Origin: Fonticula alba ATCC 38817
Lineage: Eukaryota; Protista; Nucleariida
NCBI GenBank assembly: GCA_000388065.2
Contig: KB932209.1
Reading direction: 5' to 3' (one strand)
DNA: 53,393 bases
Positions 41,964 to 43,910 of this stretch are shown here, piece by piece. The position numbers were made by a program, and so were the translations under genes. The notes below the pieces were generated by a model. It was not told the DNA's origin. It saw only the letters and a program-made list of their open reading frames with translations, and did not search any database. Position 1 is the first letter of the stretch, and each line of letters opens with the position of its first letter.

Positions 41964-43910
41964 ATGATCACCCAGACAGCTCGCTCGGCGGGGCGCCTAC
42001 GCCGGCATTTGCCCGTCCGAGCGAGCGTCAGCCACCCGACGGACTCGACTGACATGCGGTCTTCCGCGGCTTCGCACACTGCCGGGCGCCGGCGCATACT
42101 GCCGACCAAGACCAGCCGACCGGCCGAGGCGCCAGACGCCCCGGCGCCGTCGCCCCCGGTGGCCGACGGATTTCAGCCGATCGTGCTCCTGCCCCGTGAA
42201 ATGGATGATCTCCTGTCTCTGGCCCGGCATAGGGAGCCCATCCTGCCCCTGTGGTTTATTTCCCTCTACTCAAACATCCCATTGGACATTGTGTCACGCG
42301 CGGTGGCCAGTGCGGTTCCCTGGCGCCAGCGTGAGGCCCTGTCGACATTGCACATTGTCGAGAGCCACATTCCCGATGCTAAGCCCCGGGAAACCACCCG
42401 GGCGCGGCGTCCGGTGCCGCACTTTCCGGCGATCGCGACGGCCGGCGTCGAGCGCTCGGAGGCCAGTCCATACGCCACGCTGGAGGCATTCCTGCAGTCG
42501 GCGGCCCCCCCGGGCCAATATCCGACTCTGTCTCAGGGGCAATGGGGTTCGGAGCTCATGCGGCCGACTGTCCGGGTCCTGGCCCAGCAGAAGCTCCTCC
42601 CCTTAACATGCTCCGATATCACTCGGCTGACCGGGGCCTCCTCTTCGCTGGTCCAGAAAATCTCCCAATCGCTCAAGAAGCATGGGGACCCTGGGAATGT
42701 CGCCGAGAAGGCCGCCGCTGCCCCCACCAGCAGCGGCAGCGGCAGCAGCAGCCGCAGCAGCAAGCCCTTCTCGCTTGAAACTAAGACTTCCACGATCCGC
42801 AAAAAAATGGCCACCCTACTCGAGCTGCTGGCCCGAGGCACGCCGCCAGCCAATGCCCCGGCTCCGGCTATTCCCGGCACCCCGAATGTCTATTCGGCGG
42901 GCCAGCTGTGTGACCTGCTCCGGGTGTCCGCCCGCTCACTTGAATCCAACCTCCTGCGCATTGCCCCCTTTTACCCGCTGGAGCCGGCGAGCAAGACATG
43001 GCCCCGATGGCAGGCCTTTGTGGCGGACATGCTTCGGCGACGGCCGCGGAATCTCGCCTACCCGGAGTCGGCCTCGAGCACGGCCTCGAGCTCGGTCTCG
43101 GACCCAGCCGATGATGCCAGCCCTGACGGGCCACTGGCTCGGTGGCGTGTCCCGCCGCCGGGCCTGGCGCCGGCCGTCGAGGGGGATCCGGCCGCTCGAT
43201 CCCCCGAAGACATGACCCTGAATGAGTTGGCCACATATGCTGGCATCAGCGTGACCGCTGTGCGGAGCATCCTCCAGCAGTGGGCCCCCTGGCATCGGGC
43301 TCTGCTGGAGGATGTCATCCGCCGGGATTCGAGAATCCGCCGGACTCGCTCGGTGGCCGAGGTCCTCTTCTCGGTGGACGCGGTGGGCGAGGGGGAGGAC
43401 GGCGGGGGGACTTCCCTCTTCGCTGGGACTGGATTTCAAGGTGGCTCGGGGCTCGGGGGCGGCGAGCGCCTGTCCTCCGGGACGCCGAACCTCCAGCGAC
43501 AGCTGGACCGGGTGCTCGCCATGCAACAGCAACATGGCCGCCTGCATTTTCCCACATCGTCGCACTTGGTAGCCCGGATTTTGGTCTTGGCACAGTGGCG
43601 CCCCCCGTCGCCGATCCCGCCGCTTGTTCTTCTTTTGACACGCGACCAGCCCACCGACCCGGCGGGCTCTCGAGCCCTAGCCCACAGCCCTTCTCACCAG
43701 GTGACCTCGCGACCAGGCGACGCCGATGGCACCCAGCTGATGGAGCAAGATATCCAGCGCCTCCACTGGGAGCTACAGGGTGCCGATGAGCAGACCGGCC
43801 TCTCGGTGGAGGCCATTGGCCGGCTGGCTGGCCTGGCACCCGAAGTGGTGACCGACGTGTTGCTGGGCAGCGCACCGCAGGAGGCTGCCGCTCGCGGTCT
43901 CGTCCGCTAG
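41964..43910 (+). CDS. Apparently intronless protein (~648 aa) with four helix-turn-helix-like repeats and an Arg-rich N-terminus
   Basis: Long ORF with coding-like composition. Motifs LTCSDITRLTGASSSLVQKI, YSAGQLCDLLRVSARSLESNL, MTLNELATYAGISVTAVRSIL and LSVEAIGRLAGLAPEVVTDVL. An AG at 41961-41962 could link it to upstream exons. Confidence 0.75.
   Translation: MITQTARSAGRLRRHLPVRASVSHPTDSTDMRSSAASHTAGRRRILPTKTSRPAEAPDAPAPSPPVADGFQPIVLLPREMDDLLSLARHREPILPLWFISLYSNIPLDIVSRAVASAVPWRQREALSTLHIVESHIPDAKPRETTRARRPVPHFPAIATAGVERSEASPYATLEAFLQSAAPPGQYPTLSQGQWGSELMRPTVRVLAQQKLLPLTCSDITRLTGASSSLVQKISQSLKKHGDPGNVAEKAAAAPTSSGSGSSSRSSKPFSLETKTSTIRKKMATLLELLARGTPPANAPAPAIPGTPNVYSAGQLCDLLRVSARSLESNLLRIAPFYPLEPASKTWPRWQAFVADMLRRRPRNLAYPESASSTASSSVSDPADDASPDGPLARWRVPPPGLAPAVEGDPAARSPEDMTLNELATYAGISVTAVRSILQQWAPWHRALLEDVIRRDSRIRRTRSVAEVLFSVDAVGEGEDGGGTSLFAGTGFQGGSGLGGGERLSSGTPNLQRQLDRVLAMQQQHGRLHFPTSSHLVARILVLAQWRPPSPIPPLVLLLTRDQPTDPAGSRALAHSPSHQVTSRPGDADGTQLMEQDIQRLHWELQGADEQTGLSVEAIGRLAGLAPEVVTDVLLGSAPQEAAARGLVR

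Follow-up and report, generated by a model that had tools for sequence, protein, structure and literature searches.

We analyzed a single-exon gene at positions 41964-43910 (plus strand) of a 53,393-nt stretch of contig KB932209.1 (assembly GCA_000388065.2) from Fonticula alba ATCC 38817 (referred to below as the window). This species, an amoeba resembling cellular slime moulds, belongs to Rotosphaerida, the sister lineage of fungi. A preliminary description of this gene, made from the DNA letters, had proposed that its product contains four dispersed helix-turn-helix (HTH) repeats, named here R1 to R4, and acts as a multivalent nucleic acid-binding protein. Our results indicate that a real orphan gene lies beneath the claimed feature and do not demonstrate a multivalent architecture of four HTH repeats. 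The interpretation that we favor, to which we give a slightly better than even chance, is an orphan gene encoding a basic protein that is flexible over most of its length and has amphipathic helices at scattered sites, with R3 as one HTH-like module.

The gene is annotated as one exon of 1947 nt encoding 648 amino acids (aa) plus a stop codon, within a 22-kb locus corresponding to positions 786638-808584 of KB932209.1, which is 1.08 Mb long. In the list of open reading frames (ORFs) of the window, it falls in an 859-codon open frame (41331-43910), of which the annotated gene is the ATG-initiated portion starting from 41964. The GC content of the window is about 65% (ranging from ~60 to 72%). 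As stop codons are rich in A and T, DNA of this composition contains long open frames in either strand. Over the gene span there is no stop in the gene frame, and 8 to 14 stops are present in each of the other five frames. Using a codon model trained on two conserved neighbors (the Q_salvage gene and a guanylate kinase exon), the gene frame is the sole frame with a positive log-likelihood per codon (+0.068), while the other frames range from -0.12 to -0.60; the GC contents at the three codon positions (GC1/2/3) of the gene are 0.69/0.56/0.77. The 5' portion of the open frame (41331-41963, plus strand), which contains poly-G and C/T-rich tracts, appears to be non-coding by its codon statistics (log-likelihood of -0.436 per codon, and no GC3 excess). 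Given the open frame, the frame-specific codon usage, and the non-coding-like upstream portion, the gene is very probably real, with its start at or near 41964. The ORF had previously been regarded as intronless and its product as a eukaryotic protein, and both statements are borne out by the annotation of a one-exon gene in F. alba.

The four segments previously described as repeats were found at the proposed positions of the plus strand and could be aligned with each other without gaps: R1 (LTCSDITRLTGASSSLVQKISQSLKK; aa 214-239, 42603-42680), which has a faint HTH-like hint; R2 (YSAGQLCDLLRVSARSLESNLLRIAP; aa 310-335, 42891-42968), an amphipathic helix that is not HTH-like; R3 (MTLNELATYAGISVTAVRSILQQWAP, beginning with MTLNELATYAGISVTAV; aa 417-442, 43212-43289), the sole credible HTH-like motif; and R4 (LSVEAIGRLAGLAPEVVTDVLLGSAP; aa 613-638, 43800-43877), which has a weak HTH-like hint. 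The starts of these segments are spaced 96, 107, and 196 aa apart. In spite of the gapless alignment, their mutual similarity was no better than that obtained with shuffled sequences. Compared in pairs without gaps, the segments scored between -3 and 27 over 26 aa with BLOSUM62 and shared 2-6 identical residues, the top pairs being R3-R4 (27) and R1-R3 (24). The best three-way ungapped block identified de novo consists of R1, R3, and R4 and has a score of 67, which was reached by 19% of shuffles; the corresponding fractions were 16% for the best four-way block (starting at aa 94, 214, 417, and 613; score 96) and 20% for the block formed by R1 to R4 (score 93). The best gapped self-alignment pairs the R2 region with the R3 region at a score of 50, versus 46.0 +/- 7.0 for shuffles, 26% of which reached 50. 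The register of R2 is also unstable, as a MAFFT alignment without R3 moved it by three residues. R2 is surpassed in its fit to the repeat block by an extra segment (LPLWFISLYSNIPLDIVSRAVASAVP; aa 94-119, 42243-42320, plus strand), with scores of 26 and 29, respectively, against the R1/R3/R4 profile. This segment is located where the protein is most hydrophobic and richest in helices (aa 78-126); fragment searches of Pfam and PHROG produced no family match for it. The similarity among the repeats is at chance level: the segments exist, and an internal repeat family generated by duplication is not demonstrated. Two tests were not counted as evidence, since the pattern and the set of segments had been chosen from the same segments and the tests are circular. 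First, the previously proposed pattern of hydrophobic residues plus Ala-Pro occurs at three sites and no others, a count not obtained in any of 5000 shuffles. Second, in leave-one-out profile scoring, the score of R3 was reached by 0 of 2000 shuffles and that of R4 by 0.2%. Collinear flanking similarity was also observed between the R2 region (42828-43050, aa 289-362) and the R3 region (43134-43340, aa 391-459), with LAR..PP..APA upstream and W-x2-W...A-[FL]-[VL]-x-D-[MV]-[LI]-R-R downstream; it corresponds to the best gapped self-alignment given above and is not significant.

The most specific signal was obtained for R3. When the whole protein was searched against Pfam, five HTH families matched aa 411-441 with E-values of 0.03-0.32, namely HTH_IclR (14.5 bits; gathering cut-off 22), HTH_Crp_2 (14.4; 27), HTH_3 (12.7; 23), Sigma70_r4 (12.2; 24.1), and HTH_17 (11.7; 27), and HTH_31 obtained 7.1 bits (27). 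The R3 fragment alone gave E-values of 0.01-0.15, with 15.8 bits for the best match. None of the 10 decoys (sequences shuffled globally or in blocks of 30 aa, and the protein read backwards) had a Pfam match at E<=1, and 10 other long ORFs of the window had no match to any HTH family in Pfam. A profile of R1 to R4 searched against PDB sequences yielded 18 matches, including a designed CAP-repeat protein, five Lrp/AsnC regulators of M. tuberculosis, DprA, and MerR-, ArsR-, LacI-, and AraC-type regulators. In these alignments, the HTH of Lrp/AsnC (TLSELATRAGLSVSAVQS) is matched to R3 (TLNELATYAGISVTAVRS), with 12 of 18 residues identical in M. tuberculosis Lrp. When R3 was omitted, the remaining R1+R4 profile retrieved designed helical barrels and LysM-type proteins, and the HTH regulators were lost, leaving only DprA at an E-value of 0.81. 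Because the decoys and the other ORFs lack such matches and the regulators are lost upon omission of R3, the HTH signal is carried by R3 and is not an effect of composition.

The canonical 20-residue HTH pattern (Brennan-Matthews/Dodd-Egan) has hydrophobic residues at positions 4, 8, 10, 15, and 18/19, Ala or Gly at position 5, and Gly at position 9. All positions of R3 fit this pattern, including a hydrophobic residue followed by Ala at positions 4-5, Gly at position 9, and hydrophobic residues at positions 10, 15, 18, and 19. The sequence before the motif is Pro-rich, and no helix 1 precedes it. Judged from its sequence, R3 is a credible candidate for an HTH-like motif. The classic HTH signature previously attributed to the repeats is retained for R3, which stands above both the decoys and the same-window controls; it fails for R2 and is faintly or weakly hinted at in R1 and R4.

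The full-length single-sequence AlphaFold2 (AF2) model has a mean predicted local distance difference test (pLDDT) score of 35.6 and exceeds 50 only at aa 418-431; it was too poor for a fold search and was not used for that. In this model, 41% of the residues are helical, strands are absent, and there are long stretches without secondary structure, many of them rich in Pro, Ser, and Gly. R2 was modeled as one continuous helix (312-336) and a helix-break-helix was modeled at R1, R3, and R4, all with low confidence (pLDDT <50 for R1, R2, and R4). A separate single-sequence AF2 model of the R3 domain (aa 407-477, 43182-43394, plus strand) reached a mean pLDDT of 64.6, a predicted template modeling score of 0.46, and a pLDDT of 74-76 at the motif. 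It contains four predicted helices (aa 419-426, 430-439, 442-457, and 464-475), with a helix, a 3-residue turn, and a helix exactly at the motif. Nearly all of the top 50 Foldseek neighbors of this model in PDB are HTH domains of the Xre/Cro/SinR/HipB/HigA/C-protein type, the LacI headpiece, or RacA, and local superpositions of 23-25 residues (RacA, NGO0477) have a root-mean-square deviation (rmsd) of 0.5-1.9 A. The modeled R3 domain is consistent with an HTH-like hairpin and is not proof of an HTH domain. The predicted structure of R3 places it among HTH-type neighbors at non-significant levels. We avoided running AF2 with an alignment of sub-threshold bacterial HTH proteins, as this would force an HTH fold and be circular.

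For the other segments, the results are less specific. R1 has no Pfam match, and its residues at positions 5 and 8 do not fit the 20-residue pattern; in the whole protein, aa 214-236 matched PHROG 6223 ('transcriptional repressor') with an E-value of 0.0023 and 18.9 bits, and the R1 fragment alone matched it with an E-value of 0.13 and 13.4 bits. In the ten control ORFs, no PHROG match was better than E 0.03, a value given by a family without known function. R4 fits most positions of the pattern, with Pro at position 12. It matched HTH_31 with an E-value of 8.9 in the whole protein and of 0.039 (14.7 bits) as a 64-aa fragment, and in PHROGs it matched 'recombinase' alone (E 0.14). R2 has Arg at position 9, where the turn lies, and Asn at position 18, and no match to it was found in Pfam, PHROG, or, among relevant proteins, PDB. 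A Gly residue is present at the turn position of R1, R3, and R4. We consider it unlikely that an old duplication within the protein gave rise to two or three real HTH-like modules (R3 plus R1 and/or R4), with R2 being unrelated. Such an origin would agree with R1, R3, and R4 forming the best three-way block and the two top-scoring pairs, with the HTH_31 match of R4, with the low-confidence helix-break-helix modeled at all three sites, and with the higher PHROG 6223 score of the whole protein than of the R1 fragment, to which other segments may contribute. It is at odds with the 19% of shuffles that reach the same block score, with the lack of any match that is significant alone, and with the designed helical barrels, LysM-type proteins, and marginal DprA match retrieved by the R1+R4 profile.

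The N-terminal 24 aa of the protein (MITQTARSAGRLRRHLPVRASVSH; 41964-42035, plus strand) are Arg-rich and acid-free and have a presequence-like composition. The first 25 aa contain five R/K (five Arg) and no D/E, and no helix was modeled here in the low-confidence full-length model. The same composition was found in 8.9% of 157 arbitrary ATG-initiated ORFs of this GC-rich window, and for this reason the presequence-like N-terminus is weak evidence for mitochondrial targeting. It is one point in favor of the reading suggested before, in which R1 to R4 would be four homologous, highly diverged HTH domains of a multivalent nucleic acid binder, possibly a mitochondrial one. Several properties of the segments point in the same direction, including their gapless alignment, the hydrophobic residues and Ala-Pro shared by three of them, the Gly at the turn in R1, R3, and R4, the sub-threshold HTH-type match of each of these three, and the HTH regulators drawn from PDB by the four-segment profile. 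We nevertheless regard this architecture as quite improbable. The three-way, four-way, and gapped alignments are equaled by 19%, 16-20%, and 26% of shuffles, respectively, and the pattern test was post hoc; R2 falls short in every respect; the HTH signal in PDB disappears without R3; and the matches of R4 in the whole protein (E 8.9) and of R1 as a single stretch (13.4 bits, E 0.13 at best) are poor. The proposal of a multivalent binder built from four HTH repeats is therefore not supported, given the chance-level similarity, the failure of R2, and the loss of the regulators from the R1+R4 profile. A broader version, in which the protein would be the founding member of a lineage-specific class of eukaryotic DNA/RNA binders with three to five very diverged bacterial-type HTH hairpins (at aa 94, 214, 417, and 613, perhaps also 310) separated by disordered linkers and perhaps located in mitochondria, is in our opinion very improbable.

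No relative of the protein was found in the collections searched. A word-indexed search of 5.8e9 protein clusters and an exhaustive phmmer search of 1.84e9 representative proteins both returned the query protein itself and nothing else, and scans of metagenome contigs and prokaryotic genomes yielded no relative that was confirmed by tblastn. The R3 domain searched alone gave no candidate relative, the whole protein had no NCBIfam match, and nothing at a curated or significant level was obtained from PDB sequences, Pfam (whole protein and fragments), or PHROGs. On the basis of these searches, the gene is an orphan restricted to the F. alba lineage. The earlier characterization of the protein as undescribed agrees with this result, as no described family was matched in Pfam, NCBIfam, the clusters, or the representatives, and the protein was found in F. 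alba alone. Orphans are common in this genome: of the seven other genes called within the 22-kb locus, three likewise lack a Pfam match on record.

A derivation from a transposon or a bacterial gene had also been suggested. It is without support, considering that there are no homologs in any collection searched and no terminal repeats. No transposase was matched in Pfam, PHROG, or NCBIfam, no second copy of the gene was present in any searched collection, and no DNA-level repeat was found beneath the protein segments. Inverted repeats around the gene consist of poly-C/poly-G low-complexity tracts, with no transposon ends, and the reading of the gene as a mobile element was rejected because the flanking inverted repeats are merely such tracts. 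It is true that the proteins most similar to R3 in sequence and in structure are regulators from bacteria and phages; however, no significant relative was detected among the 1.84e9 representatives, prokaryotic genomes, metagenomes, PHROGs, and NCBIfam, and both the GC content and the codon usage of the gene agree with those of the host. Acquisition of the gene or of the R3 module from a bacterium, a phage, or a transposon is extremely improbable.

The low-complexity tracts near the gene were recorded separately. A G run of about 21 bases lies at ~41654-41675, upstream of the gene ATG, and a C/T-rich tract with a C run is located at 41860-41925, about 200 nt 3' of the G run and just before the ATG. 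Together they make up an imperfect inverted repeat, with 81% complementarity between its arms (41654-41680 and 41874-41900), and they may be low-complexity elements of a promoter or a 5' untranslated region. Comparable C/T and G tracts occur again at 43960-44000 and 44222-44250.

Several observations weigh against our preferred interpretation of an orphan protein with R3 as one HTH-like module. All of the Pfam HTH matches fall below the curated cut-offs. The best Foldseek hit of the R3 model in PDB has an E-value of 1.8, and with template modeling scores of 0.27-0.38 and a global rmsd of 7-11 A none of the hits is significant, so that R3 could be only an HTH look-alike. The hints in R1 and R4 lie in the expected register and the Ala-Pro pattern at three sites is striking, so that a very diverged multi-copy architecture retains some probability. 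As there are no orthologs, conservation can be used neither for nor against this interpretation. Finally, the codon bias of the gene is weaker than that of its conserved neighbors (GC3 of 0.77 versus 0.86). The last point also bears on another explanation, according to which the gene is very young or non-functional, or the ORF was over-called, and the HTH likeness is a by-product of Ala/Leu/Arg-rich amphipathic helices. This would be in line with the lack of homologs in all collections searched, the very low AF2 confidence, the slight codon preference (+0.068 per codon), the frequency of long open frames at ~65% GC, and the other genes of the locus without a Pfam match (three of seven). Against it stand the frame that stays open for 648-859 codons where each of the other five is interrupted by 8-14 stops, the codon usage that is clearly above that of all other frames and of the upstream segment, and the lack of HTH matches in same-composition decoys and other ORFs of the genome. 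The frame-specific codon statistics make a spurious ORF less likely, and we assign this explanation as a whole a low probability.

If the preferred interpretation of a flexible orphan protein with a single HTH-like module is correct, the four 'repeats' would be helical segments of similar composition that are not distinguishable from chance likeness, and R3 and the two helices after it would probably form a small helical module. Any activity of the protein might then consist of binding to nucleic acids or to a partner via the R3 module, with R1 and R4 perhaps helping. The protein is basic (isoelectric point of 9.85) and rich in Ala, Leu, Ser, Pro, and Arg, and its basic flexible regions would add non-specific affinity. 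The pointers to nucleic acid binding are indirect ones, namely this isoelectric point and the R3 motif.

Comparison with known systems places R3 closest to the HTHs of bacteria and phages, such as Lrp/AsnC, IclR (PF09339), Xre/Cro-type HTH_3 (PF01381), sigma-70 region 4 (PF04545), and MerR/excisionase-like HTH_17 (PF12728). R3 resembles them in the 20-residue pattern, matches five Pfam HTH models in the right register, and has Xre/Cro/LacI/RacA domains as Foldseek neighbors. It differs from them in its sub-cut-off scores, its non-significant fold matches, and the lack of a preceding helix 1, and its host is a eukaryote, in which it is part of a 648-aa protein that is mostly without confident structure. 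With the Myb/SANT repeats and the HTH pairs of the paired-like or CENP-B/Tc1-mariner transposase kind, the present protein has in common the notion of a single eukaryotic polypeptide carrying more than one small helical unit for DNA binding. In contrast to these, the protein has no Pfam match to any of those families, its segments are 96-196 aa apart instead of adjacent, there is no regular Trp spacing, the repeat similarity is at chance level, and there are no transposon ends. PPR, mTERF, and OPR proteins are alike in having helix-turn-helix hairpins and a possible organellar presequence, but they contain tandem units of 30-38 aa that are detectable by Pfam, whereas the segments here are few and dispersed; no PPR, mTERF, or OPR match at E<=10 was found in the whole protein. 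In the tests applied here, the protein belongs neither to these families nor to the Myb/SANT, paired-like, or CENP-B proteins. The likeness to orphan genes of GC-rich protist genomes includes the absence of homologs, the Ala/Pro/Ser/Arg-rich composition, the low model confidence, and the Pfam-less neighbors; the protein differs from them by the specific sub-threshold HTH signal of R3, which is missing from the decoys and the other ORFs.

If the four-HTH architecture were true, a relative of fungi that branches deeply would possess a disordered protein with dispersed bacterial-type HTHs, which is unusual for a eukaryote. On the present evidence, the gene is another orphan of a poorly sampled lineage with one candidate motif of the DNA-binding type. 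It also illustrates that, in GC-rich, Ala/Leu/Arg-rich proteins, amphipathic helices aligned by eye and patterns defined post hoc can greatly overstate significance in comparison with unbiased shuffling.

With regard to the neighborhood of the gene, the two annotated genes just upstream, at 35196-38780 (minus strand, 969 aa) and 39350-41604 (plus strand, 481 aa), correspond to 3233-6817 and 7387-9641 in the coordinates of the 22-kb locus. Neither has a Pfam match on record, and so there are three consecutive orphan genes in this stretch. Downstream, the guanylate kinase gene (243 aa; 44264-45357, minus strand) is convergent with the orphan gene, the stop codons being 353 bp apart. One or more introns split it, and CT/GA dinucleotide repeats abound in the intervening sequence.

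Other features were noted further away in the window. A long (TG)n microsatellite at ~48737-48834 runs directly into an assembly gap of Ns (48835-49593), and this gap accounts for the apparent drop of the GC content to 0.41 and for the long ORFs listed there in each of the six frames. An open frame of 376 aa at 4712-5842 (minus strand) has an N-terminal match to NDUFB4, the B15 subunit of complex I (E 7.5e-05, 23.1 bits, cut-off 21), with no assignment for the rest of the frame. A sub-threshold match to myotubularin-like phosphatases (E 3.2e-05, 23.4 bits versus a cut-off of 25) was found at 23378-24778 (plus strand), and this ORF probably represents a single exon within a longer gene. In addition, a 964-codon open frame at 6487-9381 (plus strand) contains an Ssu72-like phosphatase domain (Pfam E 9e-46) whose match is broken into four stretches. 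Typical Ssu72 proteins are much shorter, so this one has insertions or extensions, or the open frame reads through introns.

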